From positions 434,001-498,000 of the forward strand of contig MCFH01000026.1 in the NCBI GenBank assembly GCA_002104945.1: a stretch of 64,000 nucleotides of DNA. Reading direction: 5' to 3'. Position numbers and translations under genes: made by a program. Shown here piece after piece: positions 1 to 15,593 of this stretch. The notes below the pieces were generated by a model. It saw nothing but the letters and a program-made list of their open reading frames with translations, was not told the DNA's origin and did no database searches. The stretch is from Piromyces finnis finn. Lineage: Eukaryota; Fungi; Neocallimastigomycota. Position 1 is the stretch's first letter. Each line of letters starts with the position of its first letter.

Positions 1-3000
1 GAAAATGGTTTAATTATAGATAATTCAACAGAAGAAAATTTATTAGATTATCTTATTGGTCCTTACCGAAAATGTGAATTAATGTTGGCTCTTTTATGTA
101 TAAAAAAAAGGAACTTGATAGAATTTAGAGAAAAAATAGAAAAAGTAAGTTGTTAATGATAAGGATACTTTTGCATTAATTATATTTGAATAAATATTAA
201 TTTGACTTTTTTTTTTTTCAAATAAATACTATACAATGTATATAAATATTATATATATTATGTTTTTTTTTTATAATATTATTACCTTATTTGTTCAATT
301 CTATAAATTATTATGATTATTATTATGATATATATATTCCTATTCATGTATATTAACTATTGTTATTTTATATCTAATCTTACCATCATATAATTATAAT
401 AATACCTTTGATATTTTTTTCCCAATATGATATTATTTAAATATTCAAACTTTTCAAAATAAAAAAAAATTCCACCTTTTTTAATTTTCCTTATTCGGTA
501 AAAATTAAACTTATAATGTCATTAAAAAAAAATAGATACTACAATTAGCAAGACAAGATGCTGAAAATGATAAATTAAATAAGAATTTTATTGGTAGTGT
601 TGCCAGTGCAATTAGAAATTATATTACCACTCCAGGAGGACAATATAATTGTGAAATAGAAAAAGATGATAAATGTTTTGAAAGAGGGGTCAAAAATGTG
701 ATAGCATCATGTAAGAATAAGCTTTTTTTTTATTCATTTATTAAATAATAAAAATTTTATATAGTTTACCCTTTTTTTTTTTCTAATGATGAATAATATT
801 AGAAAGAATTTTACTAATTAATTTAAAAAAAAAAAATTGAATGAGAGATATTATTTAAATTGGTTAATTTTATTATTATTATTATTTATTTATTTAATAA
901 GATTGTTCTTTCAATGAACTAATTTTTTTTTTAATATTTTAATACATACTCTTTTTTTTTTTTTTTATTTTATGATTCCCCTTCTCTATTCCCTCATTTT
1001 ATCATTTAGTATCAGAATACCCAAAATGTCATCCTCCAACCCTCATGTATATAAGACATCAACCAAAAGAAGAATACTTACAAAAAAGTGGAATACAATG
1101 GAAACCTAATTGTGCAATAATATCAGATGATAAAAAAAGAATTGAACTATTAGAAAAAAAAATACCAGGAATAACTGGTATATATATATATTTATTTATT
1201 TATTTATTTATTTATTAAAAAAATATAAATATATATATTTACATAGATAGAAAGATAGATAGATTATTAAAATTTACATGTAATCTAATTATATAATTTA
1301 TATATAAATATGTTTAATTCATATAATCTATTTTATTTTCGGGTTTGCTTCAATTGGTAATTATATAGTCACCTCACCAACATCAATTAAACCACCAGTG
1401 AAAAAAGATGAAAAACCCTCCTTCCTCAGAAGAAAACAACCATCCTACTCATTCTTAAGAAATTCATCCAATAGACCAACCATGAGACAAAGTAAATAAA
1501 GAATTAAGCGAATTGTTTGAAGAATAAGAAAAAAAAAGAAACCTTTTTTTTTTAAAAAAATTTCACAAAAATTAATTTTTATTTTTATTATTGAAATAAA
1601 TTAATATAAAATAGATGATATAAATATATCCTCTGGAGGTGTATCTCTGTTAGCAAGAAAGAATAATGGACCAAGAAGAAATATGTTATTAGATTTAGAA
1701 GAAGTTAATCGTTTGAATCAAATACAAGAAGAAGAGAAACGGTTAGCACAAAAAAGAGAAGAAGAAGAAAAAGCAGCAGCTGAAAGAGAAAAAGAGAGAA
1801 AGAAAAAAGAAGAATTAGCCAGAAAGCAAAAAGAAAAAGAAGAAAGAGAAAGGGAACGTATGGAAAAACGTAAAAAGAAACAAAAAGAAGCAGAAGAAGA
1901 AAAGAAAAGAAAAGAAGCCCTTAAAGAAGCCAAAGAAAAGGAAGCACGAGAAAAAGAAAAAAAGAAACAGGAAGCCTTAGCTGCAGCACGTGAAGCTAAA
2001 GAAAAAGAAGCTCGTGAAAAAGAGATAAGAAAATTGAAAGAAAAAGAAGCTAAAGAGAAACAAAAACAAGAAAGAATATTACAACGTGAAAATTCAGTGA
2101 CTTCTCCAGTGAAAAGAAGAAGTAAGTATTTTATTTTTTTTTTTAGAAAAAAAAAAAAAAGAAATATTATATTTTTGATTCATTTTCAACTCTTTAACAA
2201 TGAAGCAATCCAATGTTTTATGTTTTATTAACAAAATATATAATATAAATTCAAAAATTTATTAATTTATTTATATTTATTTTTTTATGATTTTATTAAT
2301 CTATTTTTTTTTTTTCGTTTGTTTGTTTGTTTTCATTTATTTACTTATTTATCAATCAATTTTTTATCAATTATTCTATTTATCCTGTAAATTTATATTT
2401 TATTAAAATGAAAAAAGCACGTAAGAAAAGAAAAGTTGGCAATGAATCTTTGGATTCTTCCGTTAACAACTCAGAAGCAAATACACCAGTACTACAAGGA
2501 AATAATGTATTGCATGATCCATCCGAAATGAATCCAGATCAAAATAATATGTATGATCAAGGTCAACAACAAGGCATGAATCCTTCCTATGATGGTGGTA
2601 ATAATTATTATCATGATCAAGAAGGAGCAAATCATCAACATTCTATTCAAAATGATCAAGATCAGGGATATTATGATCCACAATACCATTCCCAACAACC
2701 TCCACCTCCACATTCCCAAAACATGGATATGGACGCCAATTCAAATTATTATGGTCAACCTCCTTCCGCCAACGGTATGCCTTCTAATGGTTATGATAAT
2801 AATGAACCACCTTCTTCTAATCATGATCAAGGTTATCCATCCTATACAGATGAATATGCTAATATACTAGGAGATACAAATCAATTAACGATGGAACAAC
2901 GCCAATTTATTGTAGATTTCTTGAGCGGTAAAAAAGGTAAATTTTTTCTCTTTAGTTTTTTTTTTTTTTTTTTCTCTTTTTCTCCTCTCCCAAATAAATA

Positions 3001-3296
3001 TATCTATATATATAATTTTTTTACTTTTTTTTTGTTATCCATAAACTTTATTAAAATATCTATCTATTTATTTATAATTGGCAAAAAAAAATACAACTTT
3101 TTTATATGTATATTTAATTTTAGTATCGGAAAATGAAACTTCAAAAATAATACCATTAAATGTAAAAACGTTTGAAGATCCAAGTGCCAATCTTTCTATT
3201 CGTGAAATTATTGAATTTGAAATGAATTTCCAAAATGGAACCTGGCGTAAATTAAAAAAGATAAAAAAGACATTGATAAATAACGCCAAAGAATAA
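1..3296 (+). CDS. NELFA: NELF-A (negative elongation factor A / WHSC2)-like protein, 5'-truncated by window edge; exons 1-144, 536-710, 1010-1177, 1369-1491, 1615-2121, 2418-2936, 3124-3296
   Basis: All six GT-AG junctions are phase-consistent; 1809 coding nt (602 aa + stop). N-terminal KCELMLALLCIKKRNLIEFREKIEKILQLARQD resembles human NELF-A KLKLLLGTLHLPRRTVDEMKGALMEIIQLASLD. C-terminal NQLTMEQRQFIVDFLSGKK...EIIEFEMNFQNGTWRKLKKIK resembles NKVTRPEKALILGFMAGSR...DTVFEMNYATGQWTRFKKYK. Human sequence recalled from memory. Confidence 0.78.
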
Positions 3297-5417
3297 AAAA
3301 GAAATAAGTAAAAAAAAAAAAAAAAAAAAGGGAGAAAAAAAATCTATATTTATTCCTTTTTATTTTTATCGATAGAAAAACAATAAATGATGGATTTATC
3401 TGTTTATAGGATAATCATTAACCTTGATCATAATAATCCACTCTCCCCAAATTAAAATTAAAATCAATTATTTATCCCAACCACTCCTCGACCTCTAACC
3501 TACCTACTTTATCCTGATGTTATAGGATATATATATATATACACACACACACCTACTCTACAACGACGACACCTATTTTGATACACATTCAAAAAAAGTT
3601 TTAAAAAAAAAGGGAAATAGGATCATCCACGTTTAATCCTATTCTTCTCATCTTCCTCATATTCTATTTAAAAAAACTTTTATTTCCTTAAATCTATCCT
3701 ACTAACTACCTACAACAATTCATAATATTAGTATATAATATATGTTTATGTTTATATGTTTTAATTTTATAATACAAAAAAAAGTTGAAAAAAAAAATTT
3801 TTTTTTTCTTGAATAAATAAAAAAATTTAAAATTTTAGTCTTCTTCCTATTTTTTTTTTTTATTTTTTAATTGTATGTGTAATGTAATGATGTAAGGATA
3901 AAAAAAAAAAAAAAAGGACAATTTTTAAAGTTTTAAATACCATATATTAGAAAAAAAAAAAAAGTTTTAAAATTTTTTTATTTATACACAGATGGTATAT
4001 AATGACCATGTAAAGTTGTTGTTATTGTTGTTGTTGTTTTTGTCCTAACACCTACTAGCAATAGAACAAAAAAAAAAAAAAAAAAAAAATACATTTTATT
4101 ATATTTTATTATATTTTATGGTCAAGTTATAAAAAAAACTTTTTTTTTTTTTTTTTTCTTCTTCTGGTTGGTAATTTTTAAAAATACACTTTACTTTTGA
4201 TAATTAATTTATCTAATAATAACAATAATAATAATGATAATGATAATAATAATCTTTAAATTATAAATCATAGTTTTTTATTTTATCATTTTTTTCAAGT
4301 ACATACATAAAATAAATTGTATCAAAAATGTACAAAAAAAAAAGTTTTTTTAATAATAAAAGTATATATAAATAGGTGGTTTAAAAAACATAATGTATAA
4401 CTACTAAAAGAATTAATTAATATCCTCTTTTTTCTTCTTTTATAAAAATAACTATAATAAACCTCCTTTTATTATTATTATTATTATTAATTAATAAATA
4501 AATAAATAAAATATGAATTTTTTAAAAACATTTTTTTTTTTTTTTTTTGATTTTCTTTACAATGTATTACAATAAAAAAAAAAAAGTTTACCTTTTATGT
4601 ATTTGAGGTGTAAATAAAAAATTCGTTTAAAAAATATATATATATATATATAAAACATTTTAATAAAAGATAATAATAAAAATAATAAGGAATAATAATT
4701 TTAGGTATCGTTATTAAAAAAAAAAAACTTTTAAAAAATTGACTATAAATGGTTATATTTAAAAATAAAAAAAAAATCATTTAATTTAAATATATGGATA
4801 AATAATATACTTTTATGAATACCTTTTTTTTCCATATTAACATTTTTTGATAAAAAAATAAATATTTTTTATTATTATTTAGTTAATCCTCTAACAATAT
4901 ATGATATTTTAATTATTTTTCTTTTTTTTTTTAAAAAAAAAAAAATAAATAAATGCATTTATTAATCATTATTATCATTATTTATTCTTATCCTTATCAT
5001 CATCTTTTTGATGAACTTTACCTTTTTCTTATTATTCCCATTATTTATCCTTATTAAAATTTTATATTAATTATGATGATTAGTAATTTTTTTTTACCAT
5101 CATTTCTAAAGCTTAAATATAAATTTAACTTTAATGCAGAATGCATTCAATTTAACATCAATTAATTTGTTAATAAATTAAATAAAAAAATTTTTTTTTT
5201 TAAATTAAACCTATCTTTTTTTTTCTATGGTTATTAGGTACATTTACAATACTTAAAAATGAATAAATATTTCTTTTGGTGCGAATTAAAAAAAAAAAAA
5301 AGAGTTTCATAATTTATTATAGTTGGTTTTATGTATTAAAAAAAAAAAAGATAAAGTAATGAATATTACTAAATTAAAATTATAATATTCAAATTATAAT
5401 AACAATATTAACAATAT

Positions 5418-5464
<47 letters not shown>

Positions 5465-8400
5465 TTCTATTTATTTAATGTTTAAATTAAAATAAATAAA
5501 AAAAAATAGGTTTTAATTATGAAAGTATAATCTATTAAATACTCTTTTGTTGTTGGTAAGATTTTCTATTAATTAAATTATAAAACTAATTAATAAAAAA
5601 AAAAGTTAATAAACTTTAAATAGTTATTTAACAATTAAACTTCAATAATAAAAATAATAATTCCTTTTAAAGAAATATTTATCAAAAAAAAAAAAAAAAA
5701 AGATAAGCATCACAAATAGAAATTTTGGAACCTGTAGCGATACTAACAACGATTATCCTTTTCTTTTGAAATTAAAAAGCAATGGCAACAACAACAGCTA
5801 TCCTTTTCTTTTGAAAATAAAAAAATATAAAAAGGTATTAATAAAAAACAATATATTACCATAATATATTACAATTGATTGTTTAACAATTAAAAAATGA
5901 ATCATTTATAAAAGAGTGTGACAATTAAAATCTATTTCATTTTTACATAATTTTATTATGATTTAATAAATATTTAATTTAATATGTATCCAATATAAAA
6001 CCTTATTTATTATTGTTTATTTTACAATGTTGTAAATTTAATGTATTGTACATAAAACAAACAGGACATCAAAAGGGTTTTAGAGCATTTCATTGGCTCA
6101 CCTTGTTTTTTAAAAATTTTAATTAATTTTACCAAATTTTTAATGTTTACTCAATATATTAAACTAATTAATTAAAATTTATGACATTAATTAAAAAAAA
6201 ATGAAATTAAAAAATAAATCTATGCCAATTCCACATTTTAAAATCTAACCCCTTTCTATTTATTTTTTAATAATAGAACATGTCTTTTTTTTTTTTTCAT
6301 ATATATATATAGAAAAAAAAAATGAAATAAGAAAAGAAGAAGGAAGAAGAAATAAAAAGTATCATATTATTCTTTTTTTCATTTATACATTAATTTATTT
6401 ATGATTTTCTTATCATGATTTTATCAATTAAATTAAATTTTATTTTTTTTTACATTCGTACATTTAAAAAAAATTAATGCAGCCCATAATACTATCAACT
6501 TTACACACGCACTTTCAAAAAAATTTTTATATATACGCAATAATAAAGTTTCAACATCAACTCTGTGCTTCATGGCAATGCCAATTTTTTTCAATGTAAT
6601 GCTTTAAAATTAAAATATCTTTAAAGTGTCTTTTTTTTGTTTTTTTAAAAAAAATAATTATATTATTATTAATTTTTTTAATTAATAAAAAAATTCTATT
6701 TCTGTATTTCTGTATACAAAAAATTACAAAATATTTACAAATACTGCTTACAATAATGCAATAGAATAAAAATTTTTTAAAAGTTCATTATTATAAATGG
6801 TGGAATAAGGTATTTAAAAAATAGAAAAACCTTTTTAATAAAAAATTAAGTAGTAGCCTCTTTTATTATTATTACCATTATTATTTTTTTTTATAAATAA
6901 AACTTGTTATCTTTTATACAACCTTCACAATTTTTCCCTTGAAAATAAAACAAATATAAATAAGGTTTGCGGACAATGAAGTCACATAAGCCATTCTATT
7001 GGTCAATATTATTGTAATTTCACATTTTACATTTTTTTATGAAGAATTAAATTTTAATTAATATATTATATATATTAATATATATTGAATATAAATATAA
7101 TCAATTTATTATATATACTAATTATATATTAATAATATATGTTTATAGTATAATGTAAAAAACAAACTCTAAGGTCTCTCTCTCTCTTTTTTTTTTTTCT
7201 CTTAGCTACAACAACAACAACAACAACAACAGCATTATGTTTTAATAGTATTTTTTTTATTCTATATAATTAATAAAGGTTTTGTAGTCTTTTTTTTTTT
7301 TATAAATTTTAGGTTAAAAAAAAAAAATACAATAAATAAAATTCTATTGGTCAAAAAATGAATAATTTATTTTTTTTTTTAATATATTTATAAATAATAA
7401 TAATAATACTAATACTATTTAATATTTTAATTTAAACTGTTTCTATATAGAAAAAAGTTTATTTTTTTTATAGAAAAGGTGAGTGTGTTTGTTGTAATGG
7501 AAAAAGTTATATTCTTTTTTATTATAAATAAAGTATTTGTTATTAGCAAGTCTTTTTATTTTTCTTTTAATTGAAAAAAATAAGTTTTTTTTTATATAGG
7601 ATAAAACAAATCATAGTAAAATTTATTAGGTTTAGTGTCAAAAACAATAACATTTGTAATAACATTTGTAATAATAATAATAATAAGGTAATTCATTAAA
7701 ACCAATAAAAATATTATAATATGTCATTTTATTTTATTTTATTTTATTTTATTATCTAATGTTTCAATATAAATTGATTTTATAAAACTTTTTTTTTTCT
7801 AAAGATAATACAATAAAAAAATAATGTATCTTTTTGTATCAAATATTTATTAAAAGTATTTAGAGAAATAAAAACATGACAAATAAACAAGGAAAATAAA
7901 TATATACGTATACTTGCTTTTCTTTTACTTGTTTGTTTGTCGCAACTCTTATAATTTATTCATTGCTTAACACATTTTTTCTCCCTTCCTTTCTAATACC
8001 CATGTTTATAACATTTATATAATAAAATTATACCTTCATGATCACTTTTAAAAACCCTTCTTTTTTTATCCTTTTCACAATAATACATTCTCTTTTAATG
8101 AAACTGTAATTTTATATAAATTAATATAAATATAATATATTGTTATCATATATTATAATGTAATAAATTAAAAATTCCACTTTTTGTAAAAAAAAAAAAA
8201 CTTCATTTGCAATAATAATAGAAATAAGAATGGATAAAAATAGAGTTCAATTAAAAGAAAAAAAAAGTCATATTATTGTATATAAATTATGAAAATAAAG
8301 TGCATCTATTTAGTATTTTATTCGTAGTTGTATTAATATAATTGATATTAATATTTAACAACATGAATACAAATATTAATATTGTTTTCTTATGGTACCT

Positions 8401-9978
8401 CTCAATACTCAATTTATTGTAATACATCATATAGAATTTAAATATTATAATACATGGTGTTAACGTTACTTTTATTAACAACACTCGGCTTCATTATTTA
8501 AAATGTGATTTTACACCTACCTACCCACCTTTTTTTAAAAGAAGTAGTTATGCCTGACCTTTTTTTGTTTTTTAAAAAAAATCTTTACCACAAAATTTAA
8601 CCTAAAGAAATTAAAGTTTTTCCTACAATTTAGCCTAAAATTTTTCAATTCAATTTTAACTGTTTCATATATAAAGTTCAATTTAATAATAAATGATGTA
8701 TCATAAAATCAATATATTCTAATATATTGTAATATATAAAAGTTTGAATTATTATTAAATATTTATATACAACATTATCAATTAAATTTAAATATAATCA
8801 ATTTATATTATTTAAATATATTAAATTTAGATTAATAAATGCTTAAATATATTATAAATAAACTTATGATATATTATTTTTATATTGAATTTACAAAAAT
8901 GTGTTTTTAGCAATTTTGAAAAATGAAATTTTGTTGAACTTGAATTTGACTTGGTTTACATATATTATTATAATATATTAATATATATTATTAATAAATA
9001 CTATAATAGATTTATATATATAAATATAATACAATAATTAAATTGTATTTGAATGGAAGAATTATTCTACACAGATAAAATTTATACCATAATATATAGC
9101 CAGAGCTACAATTTTTTTACCATAAAATTTTGGTAACTATTGTTAGTAAAATTTTGCCAGGCCAAATAAAGTTCTTACTAGAAAATCGACAGTAATGGTT
9201 TTATTATTTACTAAAGTAATGCCTTTTTTTTTTTAAATAGAATGGCTTTATTTTTTTGTTGTTATTACAAAATAGGTAGATTAATAAAGAGGTAAATGGA
9301 AATATCGCTTTTTTTTTTTTTATTATTTAGTTTTATTTTTTTTTTTTTAAGAAGATAATTTATGCATAAATTTTACCAGACATATTTTAAATGAATGGTA
9401 AAATGTTAGGTAAATTTTTTTTCCAATTATGGATAGTTAGTTTATAAAGAATAAACCTTTCACTCTTTATGATACAATAGACTATAGTATATAGCTATTT
9501 ATTCATCTAAATATTTATTCTTTTTCATTTTATTTCCATCTTAATTCCTTTTTTTTTCTTATTTTAACCAAGCCTTTTCCCTACTTTCCTCTTACTTTTG
9601 CCTGCTTTTTTACCAGATTTCTTGCCCAACTTCTTGCTTGTTTTTTGGGTGAATTTTTTTTTTGTATTTTGTTTCATTCTCCATTAAATACCAAATTCTT
9701 CCAGTCGATTGATTCCATATATTAAATATATATAAATTGAATTAACTATTTATATTTTAATATAATTTGTGAATTTTTTTTTTTTTTAATTTTCCCTCTA
9801 TATGGAATAATAGTAAGAAGAAAGTCTTTTCTATTACAAAAAGCAAACCATTACTTTTGCCTACACACCTTCGACGTGGTCCTTTTTCTTTTTTTTTTTT
9901 TTTCCCTTTGGAATAGTTTCTTATCAAACCTAGTGCCTTATGACTTTTTAATACATCAAACCACACATCAACTAAACT

Positions 9979-10272
9979 ATTTATTTAAATTATTATTGAT
10001 TCATTCATTGAATATTCTTGTTATTTATTTAAATTATTATTGATTCATTCATTGAATATTCTGGTTATTTATTTAAATTATTATTGATTCATTCATTGAA
10101 TATTCTGGTTATTTATTTAAATTATTATTGATTCATTCATTGAATATTCTTGTTATTTATTTAAATTATTATTGATTCATTCATTGAATATTCTGGTTAT
10201 TTATTTAAATTATTATTGATTCATTCATTGAATATTCTGGTTATTTATTTAAATTATTATTGATTCATTCAT
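9979..10272. repeat. 44-bp AT-rich minisatellite, ~6.7 copies
   Basis: Unit ttatttatttaaattattattgattcattcattgaatattct(t/g)g starts at 10021, 10065, 10109, 10153, 10197 and 10241, plus a near-complete copy from ~9979. Confidence 0.95.
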
Positions 10273-12604
10273 TTATTTAAAAGGTTTTCATTTTCAATAT
10301 ATTTTAATATATGTCAAAATATATGGTACGATATATTTCAATTGACATGAATTTAGTTCATAAAATTTCAATTACCACAATTAATATATGAAGTAGTAGA
10401 TTCGTATTAAATTGTAACATTAAATAAATATATATTATTGAGTATATTATAATCTATTAATTTAATATATTGAATTGTAATTCATTGGTTTGAAAATTAA
10501 AATTTTTATTTATTTCATCATCTTTTCACCTCAGTAGTCATAAAAAAAAATTGATGATTTAATACAAAGGATTTATTAAAAATGCAACCTTTCTATAAAT
10601 TTATAATTTTTAATATAAACACATATTAACAGTATACTCTCAATATATAATAGACATATATTAAATTATATTGAATGAAATGTTTTAATTTAAAAGTCAA
10701 AAAAATTTTATAAATAAAAAAGTTGGTTTTGCTTTAATTTTTTTTTTCTCCTTTGCGATTGAAAAGATCTTTTATTGTTAGGATTAGTAGTGTGTATTAT
10801 TAGGATTAGATAAAAACCATCATCTTTTATAAAAAGTCAATCTTTTAGAAATAGGAACATTTCAACTATCAAAAAAGAAAAAAAAAAAAAGAGAAAATTT
10901 AATAATTTCAATGTTTAAATATGAATAGTATCATTGGTTAAAGTAAGACTAGTTGATAGAATAAAAAAAAAGATATCCATTTAAGCGTAAGCTTTATAAA
11001 AATTACTTTTTTTTTTTTTTTAAAAAAAAAAGATTAAAAACAACAAAACAACCTCATTAATGGAAACAGTTTTTTATTAAAGTGTAAAAGAAAGAAAAAA
11101 AAAAAAAAACTCAATTATACGCTTTGCATTATACCAATTAATAATTATAATTTTAATTATTAATCTTTTTTTTTATTTTAACAAAAAGTATACTTTAATA
11201 ATTTACTTTTTTTTTTATTTATTATTGTGATATAATAGTGACTATAATCAAATCCTATTTTATACTTCATTATTATACACATTTAAAACATTGACATCCA
11301 TTTTTATTTCTTACTTAAACTATTTATAAACCATAATTTGCATAGAATAAATACACATATTTAGTAAATATTAATTTATTTTAAATTAAATAGAAATTAG
11401 AAAAAAAAAAGAAGCAGTTTGACATTTTATTTTGATTTTTAAATTAGTAAAATAAAAAATAGAAATAAATATATAATATAAAATCTTTATATTTAGATTT
11501 TTAAGGCAAAATTGGTAAATTTCTTGAAGCAACGCGAATAGAAATTTGGCCAATAAATCAAGTATTAATAATTTAAATATAAAAAGTTAAAAACATTATT
11601 CCATCCTAATCTATTAAATATACCATTATATAGTTTACTATCCGTTTACTTTATAAAAGTAAATTTTAAATTATTTTTATATTTTGCAAAGATATAAAAA
11701 TTTATATTGACCTATACTATAAAATTTTGAATATATTATTATAGTATAATATACCTATAAATTTTTTTATCTTTCTAAAAATATTGGAATTATCTGTTAA
11801 AATATATATATATAAAAAGAAAAATTATAATGAATAATACTCAAGTTAAGAAAAAATCTCATAAAAGGTAATTCTTTATGTTATATTCTTAATAAATTTT
11901 ATTTTAAATACCATTGTTTTTTTTAAGAAAAAAAAAAAAAAGAATATAAAATTCTATATTATAATACATATTTTTTTTTAAAAAAAAAAGAATGGTATTA
12001 AAAAAAGATAAATTCAATAATATAGAAAGTGGGATTGTTGTTATTGTTAAAGCATACTTTTTTTTATTAAGATATCGTTTATTGGTTTGTTTATTTGTTT
12101 GTCTATTTTTTTTTTAATTATAATTAGTATTTAAAAAAATATAAACCTTTTCATAACCAAAACCAAAAATGCAAATTAATAAAGTTGAAAAAACAATTAT
12201 GGTTTAAAAAAAGGTTTTATTTTTTAAGGTGTAAAATAATTATAATTAAAAAAAATTTAAATCTATCTATATAAAAAAAGCATGCTTTAAATAATGCAAA
12301 GTGCTGAATTGTATATTATTGGATTTTTATCAGTAGTGTATTAGATTTTTTAGAACAATAACAACAACAATAGAGATTTGATATTGGTTTAAAAAAGGTC
12401 GTTTTTAAAGTTTTTAAATTTCAAAAAAATTAAAATTTTATTATTATTTATTTTTTTTAATTTTTATTTTCATTCACCTTGACTAAAAAAAAAAAAAAAA
12501 AAAGAAAATTCGAAGGGGATGAAAATCAACAACATCATTACTCTAAATCCCAAAAATTGGTGAGGGAAAGAAATAGAAAGGCAAAATTAAGAAAAAATCC
12601 AGCA

Positions 12605-15593
12605 ATGTGTAAGTTTTATATTTTAAATATATAATTTAGTTTTTTGAAAAAAGAAATTGATTTGGTGAATTGTGAAATAGTTTAAGATGGAAAAAAAGAA
12701 ATGAAATATTGATTTTATTTTTTTACACTTTTTTTTTTTTAATTATTGTTTTTGATGAATGATATGGTCATGTAAATAGCTATATTTGAAGCTGGACGTG
12801 AACGTACAAAAAGAATTGTAAAAAAAGAATATCCAAGTATAAATTTAAATAAACCACCTTCTTCTATAGCTTCATTATCAACATACACCCCAAGAAATAA
12901 AAAGAATGATGAAAAATTGAGTAAAAATGAAAAAGAAAATAAAACAACCATTTATAAACGTACGACGTTTAGACTTCCGATTCGTGAACCTTCAGCACAA
13001 AATTTTGATATGTATTATTATTTAGCACCCAATTGTGAACCAGCTGCAGTAACCAATATTTTAGAACTTTACGATCAAACTAAATCAAAATTATTACAAA
13101 AGAAAAAAGCAATGAAAGCCAATACTTCTCTAAAACAAATTGATGGTGGGGAGGATCTTTCAAAAGAAAATGTTTTGAAGGATAAAGAAAATGATGTAAA
13201 AAAATCAACAAATTCTAAAAAGTCTAGTCATGCCACATCCAATAAAAAAAATCTTTCAGAAACTTCCCTTAAAAACAAAGGTATTTTAACCAAGAGTAAT
13301 ACCAATGTTGCAAATATTATAAAATCTGTCAAGGGTCATAAATTAGCCAAAGGTAATTTTATGAAAAATTGTTGAAAAAAATAGTTTAAACCTATAGTGT
13401 AGTATAGATTTTTTTTTTTTTACAATAAAATATTAAATCTATAGAAGTAAAGTAGTAGTATAAAAAATCTTTTTTTTTTTTAACAATACTAAACTTGTCG
13501 TATTAAAAATAGTATAGAAAATTTGATTTTTTTATTGTAATTTAAATATATGTTATGAAAAAAATATATTTCATAGAAAAAATTTATTTACTTATTCTTT
13601 TTTTTTTTTTCCCATTATAGATGCTAAAGGTAGTGCCGTTAAAATAGAAATATTAGATGATAATAAAGAAAATATTCCACCGTTGCATCATAATCAAAAC
13701 AATGCTACCATGAATTTACAATTTGTTGACTATCCTTCAGGTAATGGTATGGTAGGAACCACAACTGTTTCCGTAGGTAATAATAATGAAGAAGAAAATG
13801 AAATGGAGACAGAAAAATCAAGCAAAGTAAAGAAAGAAGATGAAGAAGTAAAAGAAGAAGACGCCATGGAAGGCAAACAAAAAAAGGTAAAACCTATTGT
13901 AGTTAATACTGTATCAGATGAAGATTTAGAAGAATTTTTCCGTGTTTTTGATGATTTAATTCCAATGTACCGTAGCTCTACTCAACTTCAAGAAGTTATC
14001 TTTGAAACCAGTCAAAAAGAATGGAATGAATGGTGTTACAAGGTAGAACAATGTGAAGAAGAAACCCATAGTTGGTTGGATGCTAGAATTATGTTTTACT
14101 CTCGTCGTATTATTGAATACCAAAAAGACTGGGCAGATTACTGGAACAAAAAAAAACAAAAGGAAAAGGAATTATTAGAAATGAGTTCCGATAGTATTTG
14201 TCCAACAACTCCTTCCTCATCTTCCGTTCTTCCATCAGATCCCATTAAATTGTTGGGATCATCTCCTCTTCCAAATTTACCATTAACCACAGATTCAGCA
14301 ACGACAAATACCTATGTTCCTTTCCAAACCCCAGATGAATCTGCCACTTCAATGCTTACCAGTAGTGAAGTTACACCCACAAAATCAAATATCAATACAA
14401 CTACGGCCTTTTCTAATCTTATGGTGGGAATGGAAGATATGGATATATCCTCCTTTTCTCTAGAATCCAATCAAGATCTTCTATCCAATATGTCACTTCT
14501 CTATGATACCACCTGCGGTCAAACCTGCTTTCCAAATTTAGATTATGGTTTAGACAGCACTTCTTCCTTTGACAGCATCGACCCCTTAAGCAATGCTACC
14601 ATTAATAATGACTATTGTAACTGGCTTAGTTCACATCCTTCCTCCTCCCTTTCTGTGGATGACTTTATCTTTAACCCTTCCCAAGATCCCAACCTTTCCC
14701 TTCTTTTAAATTCTGCTGCCATTACCGGCTCCACTATACCAACCCCTACCCCAACCCTAAACTTTTTAAATCCCTTAGGCGCCACTTCATCCTCTTTAAA
14801 TCCAGCCCTTTCCATTTTTGATACCAATTATGCCACCTCTACTTCTACTCCAGATAATATAATAATACCACCCACATCCTTGGTAAGATTTCCAACTACC
14901 TCCTCCACGGCTTCTCTTATTGATTCCTTTGCAAATCTTGATCCAAATCAAGAAGAAGTAAAGGAAGGAAGGGAAGAAGAAGAAGAAGAAAAGAGAGAAA
15001 AGGGAGAAAAAGAAGTGGAAGGTACTAAAGAAAAAGCAAATCAATTAAATGAAGAAACACTTTCCATTCCTACCGCTTCAACCGATGCATTAACTGCTAA
15101 TGATGCTGCTGCCATGACTTCTTTATTTTCCCATGATTTAGGAATAGATCTTCTCTTCCGACAAGACCAAAATGACCTCAAAGAAAATATCACTTTGGAA
15201 AATATGAATGTAGAAAACATCCAAGCCAACCTACCCTTAAACAACGCGTCAAAGGAAACCCCAAAGATGACCATTAAAACCGTAACGGATGCCTTAATGA
15301 CCCCAACCAAACCAAAAGAATGTATTCCACCTACGGTAGACATTATTGTTGATAGTTCAACCAATGACGATAAGAAAATTTCAGAATTTGCAACGCCTCT
15401 CTATATAAAACCACCTGCTAAAGATATATTTTCTACAATACCAAAATCATATCAAGAAATGTACAACGATAAGATGTATTCCCTTATTTCAACCCTTGAA
15501 CGTTGTGTACAAGATAAGGAAGATTTTTGGAAAGTTATGGAAGAATTTACATCCTCCATTCATACTCATGCTTCTGTTACGATTACTTGTTGA
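12605..15593 (+). CDS. Hypothetical ~849-aa low-complexity protein; exons 12605-12608, 12780-13352, 13621-15593
   Basis: ATG-T|gtaagt at 12605 splices in phase to ag|CT ATA TTT (MSIFEAGRERTKR...). Intron 13353-13620 joins ORFs 12917 and 13683; total 2550 nt. Ser/Thr/acidic-rich; no family recognised. Confidence 0.7.

Follow-up and report, generated by a model that had tools for sequence, protein, structure and literature searches.

A probable NELF-A orthologue encoded by a seven-exon gene in the anaerobic fungus Piromyces finnis

In this study, we describe a gene with seven coding exons at positions 1–3296 (forward strand) of a 64,000-nucleotide stretch of the Piromyces finnis genome (contig MCFH01000026.1, positions 434,001–498,000; hereafter the window), whose product of about 672 amino acids (aa) is, with a probability of roughly 0.8, the P. 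finnis orthologue of NELF-A, the A subunit of the negative elongation factor (NELF), which pauses RNA polymerase II in animals. Membership of the fungal protein in the NELF-A family is well supported by agreeing and in part independent lines of evidence, not proven. NELF is usually called absent from fungi, a judgement made on budding and fission yeast, and the literature bears out that Saccharomyces cerevisiae and Schizosaccharomyces pombe lack it, as an earlier reading of the DNA letters alone (the sequence-only reading) had stated. In the most detailed published survey, Chivu et al. (10.1101/2023.02.19.529146) treat HDAg-bearing NELF-A as having arisen in animals and Capsaspora, a distribution that a fungal NELF-A contradicts; the P. 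finnis gene, which that survey did not list, is new relative to it.

The seven-exon gene is real and intact. The first 3.3 kb of the window are extremely rich in AT; seven islands with a GC content of 25–37% are bounded by gaps of ~12–20% GC; all seven hold a single open frame, every intron runs from GT to AG (phases 0, 1, 1, 1, 1, 1), and the coding sequence closes with a TAA stop codon at 3294–3296. Where introns interrupt codons, five times in all, the residues are L, V, N, T and V, in agreement with the corresponding positions of the orthologues. In the fetched locus (L001, in which a position equals the window position plus 3593), the ATG of exon 1 lies at L001:3384, 209 nt upstream of window base 1; the gene therefore consists of seven coding exons and no more, with a coding length of 2019 nt for 672 aa, and its first 70 codons alone fall beyond the window edge. 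The sequence-only reading had proposed a phase-consistent gene of seven exons that the list of open reading frames (ORFs) cuts into unrelated-looking pieces; the splice sites, the frames and the tiling on five orthologues described below uphold that structure, and the fragmentation is plain in the ORF list itself. The gene and its deposited model are laid out as follows.

1–144, forward strand: 3′ part of exon 1 (whole exon L001:3384–3737), encoding N-terminal helices and ending at a phase-0 donor, GTAAGT, at 145; the last ~26 codons open the NELF-A_N-like core (LIGPYRKCELMLALLCIKKRNLIEFREKIEK)
536–710, forward strand: exon 2, NELF-A_N-like core (ILQLARQDAENDKLNKNFIGS...), equivalent to residues 109–166 of the Anaeromyces robustus orthologue and within its Pfam NELF-A_N match
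1010–1177, forward strand: exon 3, SEYPKCHPPTLMY...LEKKIPGIT, conserved among anaerobic fungi
1369–1491, forward strand: exon 4, basic, Ser-rich stretch (KKDEKPSFLRRKQPSYSFLRNSSNRPTMRQ)
1615–2121, forward strand: exon 5, invariant M.LD.EEVNRL motif (MLLDLEE, 1683–1703), followed by a Lys/Glu-rich stretch of ~130 aa
2418–2936, forward strand: exon 6, RKKRKV resembling a nuclear localization signal (2420–2437), a poorly conserved N/Q/P-rich linker and, from 2852 on, the first part of the conserved C-terminal domain (EYANILGDTNQLTMEQRQFIVDFLSGKK)
3124–3296, forward strand: exon 7, remainder of the conserved C-terminal domain (…IIEFEMNFQNGTWRKLKKIKK…), including FEMNFQNGTWRKLKK, plus TAA
2408–3296, forward strand: deposited truncated model ORX48687.1, covering exons 6–7 only

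When exon 7 (56 aa) served as query in an exhaustive HMMER search, four proteins came back (P0001, P0002, P0004 and P0003), of which P0001, the deposited model ORX48687.1, is 100% identical to the query, and P0002 is an A. robustus protein of 653 aa (ORX84701.1/A0A1Y1XG22). Four further full-length relatives of 662–682 aa (P0005–P0008) come from anaerobic fungi as well. When the P. finnis exon translations were searched and aligned singly, the seven tiled contiguously on all five full-length orthologues (P0002 and P0005–P0008), leaving one residue for each split codon, with a per-exon identity of 62–95% to P0005. The gene is thus conserved across six anaerobic fungi, among which the N- and C-terminal domains show a mean column identity of 77–80%. 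The A. robustus gene carries introns after codons 108 (phase 0), 166+1, 432+1 and 596+1, which correspond to P. finnis junctions 1, 2, 5 and 6. Two of the HMMER matches are of a different kind. P0003 (3125 aa) holds five weak repeated matches to query residues 18–52 (34% identity, expectation value (E) 3.7e-5), and P0004 (67 aa) has its last 24 residues identical to the anaerobic-fungal NELF-A C-terminus and a first half that resembles a P-loop NTPase fragment; a chimeric or misassembled contig is its probable source.

The A. robustus and P0008 orthologues appear to be expressed as spliced transcripts. In runs SRR9694924 and SRR12917191, assembled contigs of 2.4 kb carry the P0002 ORF without a break, and the P0008 ORF is likewise unbroken in a contig of SRR25404267; since the genomic copy of P0002 has introns, such contigs are read as spliced mRNA. 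For P. finnis itself, four runs from three studies, whose library type is an unconfirmed tool guess ('RNA?'), hold 0.49–0.51 of the sampled words of window 1–3400, against an exonic share of 0.53, a value that fits spliced transcripts and is only suggestive of them. Comparison of the assembled A. robustus contig with the genome also revealed indels in the N-rich linker.

Tests of identity were run on the database orthologues, chiefly P0002, because the exon pieces of the window are too short for matches. With residues 570–653 of P0002 as query, the best match in the PDB was human NELF-A (6GML chain U, residues 445–523 of 528, E 0.032), the matched part, residues 574–646, aligning within the last 85 residues of the human protein; a C-terminal profile built from five sequences (A3) again found human NELF-A first (residues 442–522), at E 0.0072. 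An Atlas structure search with residues 566–653 returned in its first row an arthropod cluster labelled 'HDAg domain-containing / NELF-A_N 100%', with a TM score of 0.76 over 81 residues. The domain spans ~85 aa and ends in FEMN(Y/F)..G.W.+.KK, as that of NELF-A does, and exon 7 of P. finnis is 85% identical (46/54 aligned residues) to the orthologue used in these tests.

The N-terminus resembles the same family at scores below the Pfam threshold. Pfam NELF-A_N (PF23553) ranks first in 5/5 orthologues, a low-complexity DUF5401 match in P0007 apart, and residues 83–165 of P0002 align with profile positions 45–119. The two top results of an Atlas feature search with residues 1–303 were NELF-A_N clusters (0.85 and 0.84), which we take at the level of a lead. 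The two regions stand in the order known from human NELF-A: the NELF-A_N-like part lies at the N-terminus, and the C-domain closes the protein at its extreme C-terminus. The sequence-only reading had seen NELF-A at both ends of the protein and had suggested a profile search as a check: the C-terminal half of that claim holds at E 0.0072, and at the N-terminus NELF-A_N is indeed the top family, at scores below the Pfam threshold.

Several observations weigh against this identification. The NELF-A_N scores are 12.3–15.9 bits (E 0.013–0.16), under the gathering score of 27, and no single match reaches a curated threshold, the PDB matches lying at E 0.007–0.03. Searches of the PDB with N-terminal (A2, A4) and mid-region (A5) profiles, at E values up to 10, yielded no NELF-A, and exon-by-exon Pfam and PDB searches with the short window pieces gave nothing meaningful. 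AlphaFold2 models of residues 1–303 and 1–175, built from shallow alignments, reached a predicted local distance difference test score (pLDDT) of 39 and 42, respectively. The UniRef name of P0002, 'HDAg domain-containing protein', is a source name only. Among the possible partners, NELF-C/D is represented in the supplement of Chivu et al. (10.1101/2023.02.19.529146) by candidates from A. robustus and N. californiae, with none from P. finnis.

The short motifs of the protein can be set beside those of published NELF-A sequences. In NELF-A and NELF-A-like sequences of the supplement of Chivu et al. (10.1101/2023.02.19.529146), ..LT.E.+..I..F(L/M)(S/A)G.., followed by FEMN(Y/F)..G.W.+.K+, and KLLDISE can be seen. 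The metazoan members there read GVKLLDISEL, then a basic stretch, and end in '...VFEMNYATGQWTRFKKYKP...', and the protist NELF-A-like members have a K/E/R-rich stretch followed by ..LIE.FLSGQ.. and VVFEMNF..GSWRKLKRRKK. In the fungal protein, 'NMLLDLEEVNRL' precedes a K/E-rich stretch, 'LTMEQRQFIVDFLSGKK' comes next, and 'IIEFEMNFQNGTWRKLKKIKK' stands at the end. At the level of sequence, the C-terminal motif match between the fungal protein and NELF-A is real. The motifs quoted in the sequence-only reading, MLLDLEE and FEMNFQNGTWRKLKK, are present in exons 5 and 7; its equation of LLDLEE with human LLDISE is plausible as a short motif in a similar position only, given that metazoan NELF-A does carry GVKLLDISEL and that the mid-region profile found no PDB match of any kind.

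NELF-A-like proteins outside animals had been reported before. Homologues of NELF-A and NELF-C in Dictyostelium and Chlorella were pointed out by Vos et al. 2016 (PMC4940160), who suggested an early eukaryotic origin with later losses. Chivu et al. (10.1101/2023.02.19.529146) found NELF-B and NELF-C/D to be widespread, recorded 'apparent homologs of NELF-A in some unicellular eukaryotes', detected the HDAg domain in animals and Capsaspora only, and proposed that NELF-A arose when an HDAg-like domain was added to an older protein. Their supplement names candidate NELF-B proteins of A. robustus, N. californiae and P. finnis, and their NELF-A files include Rhizophagus and Basidiobolus and no anaerobic fungus. 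With Dictyostelium, Chlorella, protists, Rhizophagus and Basidiobolus already on record, a NELF-A in anaerobic fungi is a smaller surprise than the sequence-only reading had assumed. No paper joining NELF with early-diverging fungi came up in the literature searched.

This record lends weight to the strongest alternative, under which the protein is a true homologue of a pan-eukaryotic NELF-A-like family and not a pausing factor, an ancestral-type protein perhaps still bound to NELF-B and NELF-C/D and serving another purpose in the nucleus. In that case, pausing in P. finnis would not go beyond the diffuse 'proto-pause' described for unicellular eukaryotes. The occurrence of such proteins in many protists and the HDAg-addition model of Chivu et al. 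(10.1101/2023.02.19.529146) speak for it, as do the weak N-terminal match and a C-terminus and K/E-rich stretch that lie closer to the protist NELF-A-like sequences than to the metazoan ones. Yet the A. robustus orthologue is named as HDAg domain-containing in UniRef, both terminal domains are strongly conserved in anaerobic fungi at the column identities given above, and NELF-B and NELF-C/D partners have been reported from the same fungi. We regard this alternative as possible, at somewhat less than one chance in three.

Far less probable is a chance resemblance, in which an unrelated, lineage-specific, Lys/Glu-rich nuclear protein happens to bear short NELF-A-like motifs at its ends. Every similarity score is under the family thresholds, most of the protein is of low complexity, and the searches used found homologues in anaerobic fungi only; word-index searches with the N- and C-terminal regions of P0002 returned the same five orthologues and no intermediates from other fungi or from animals. 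Against this, two separate regions each pick NELF-A as their best match, one among 24,736 Pfam models and the other among 177,635 PDB sequences, with order and termini both as in NELF-A, which makes chance unlikely, and NELF-A is also what the UniRef name and both Atlas searches, by structure and by feature, indicate.

The least probable alternative, which we consider very improbable, is that the upstream exons are dead remnants and the 233-aa deposited model is the real product: the deposited annotation does cover exons 6–7 only and none of the P. finnis runs listed is on record as RNA, but the seven exons share one consistent phasing, are free of stops and have canonical splice sites, the upstream exons are 66–95% identical to the orthologues at the protein level, full-length ORFs of orthologues run without a break through short assembled contigs, and the deposited start ATG sits in the acceptor region of intron 5. 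That model, ORX48687.1 ('hypothetical protein BCR36DRAFT_293298', Piromyces finnis, contig MCFH01000026.1), begins at an in-frame ATG at 2408 (2408–2417 = L001:6001–6010), 10 nt inside intron 5, leaving exons 1–5 unannotated, and no further gene is called within the 12.9-kb locus. The P. finnis gene model needs correction from 233 aa to about 672 aa, and its truncation helps to explain the absence of P. finnis from surveys.

If the protein is NELF-A, its action may be outlined by analogy with human NELF, in which the NELF-A_N domain is the NELF-C/D-binding module (Vos et al. 2016, PMC4940160). The N-terminal helices would pair with NELF-C/D and NELF-B would bridge the lobes, whereas the basic segment and the long flexible linker might extend over RNA polymerase II (Pol II) and DSIF in place of the metazoan 'tentacle', and the RKKRKV motif might steer nuclear import. 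Together with the reported NELF-C/D and NELF-B homologues, the fungal NELF-A could form a NELF of at least three subunits, which, bound to Pol II along with DSIF, would slow early elongation; the outcome might be either a focused, regulated pause as in animals or a weaker 'core-NELF' effect as described by Chivu et al. The sequence-only reading had suggested that anaerobic fungi may keep a NELF complex and metazoan-style pausing, a step that stays at the level of inference. The fullest version, in which anaerobic gut fungi have a complete NELF (HDAg-bearing NELF-A, NELF-B, NELF-C/D and a NELF-E-like subunit) with focused, regulated promoter-proximal pausing, seems to us unlikely. If it were true, the 'ancillary' function of NELF-A would date to the opisthokont ancestor or before, and its loss in Dikarya would be secondary. 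A search of papers found no nascent-RNA data for anaerobic fungi.

The surroundings of the gene are sparse. Scans of window 240–4200 for tRNA and Rfam families gave zero matches, and the tandem repeats there are short AT-rich arrays alone, located in introns and in the 3′ flank. Over ~9.5 kb downstream of the gene (window 3297–12900; GC 8–30%), neither strand holds an ORF of 70 aa or more, the next sizeable ORFs lying at 12917–13375 and 13683–15593 (forward strand).

The finding adds a further member to a known ancient family and fits an ancient origin with secondary loss. An intact and conserved NELF-A orthologue in Neocallimastigomycota, apparently expressed there, speaks together with the NELF-B and NELF-C/D candidates of the published supplement for the inheritance by fungi of a NELF of at least three subunits and for its loss in Dikarya. 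Anaerobic fungi also offer a setting outside animals for testing what NELF-A does.

HDAg (PROSITE PS51838) is a profile that marks NELF-A and corresponds to its Pol II-binding region. Compared with human and other metazoan NELF-A (WHSC2; PDB 6GML chain U and 5L3X), the P. finnis protein has the same order of parts: a helical, NELF-A_N-like N-terminal region, a basic segment, (K/M)LLD(I/L)(S/E)E with a basic stretch, a long low-complexity linker and a C-domain of ~85 aa. The C-domains are alike in ..LT.E.+..I..F(L/M).G.. and, at the very end, FEMN(Y/F)..G.W.+.KK. The fungal protein differs in its N-terminal similarity, which is under the Pfam threshold, in its greater length (about 672 aa versus 528 in human) and in its linker, which is Lys/Glu-rich and then N/Q-rich, whereas that of metazoans is Pro/Ser/Thr-rich. 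Binding of NELF-C/D or Pol II is a prediction for the fungal protein. The protist NELF-A-like proteins of Chivu et al., grouped here with the Dictyostelium and Chlorella homologues, belong to non-metazoan lineages in which NELF-B and NELF-C/D occur too; they share with it the K/E/R-rich stretch before the C-domain and a near-identical C-terminal wording; they are reported to be without a detectable HDAg domain, whereas the A. robustus orthologue bears HDAg as its UniRef name. A further comparison is with the orthologous A. robustus gene (L003:3001–6565, MCFG01000047.1), the protein of which (ORX84701.1) is 65–86% identical per exon to that of P. finnis for exons 1–5 and 7, and 48% for exon 6. 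It is annotated at full length, unlike the P. finnis gene with its model truncated to 233 aa, and has extra introns relative to P. finnis; within the counterpart of P. finnis exon 5 it shows a micro-exon of ~24 nt (coding sequence positions 1274–1297). At least four intron positions and phases are common to the two genes.

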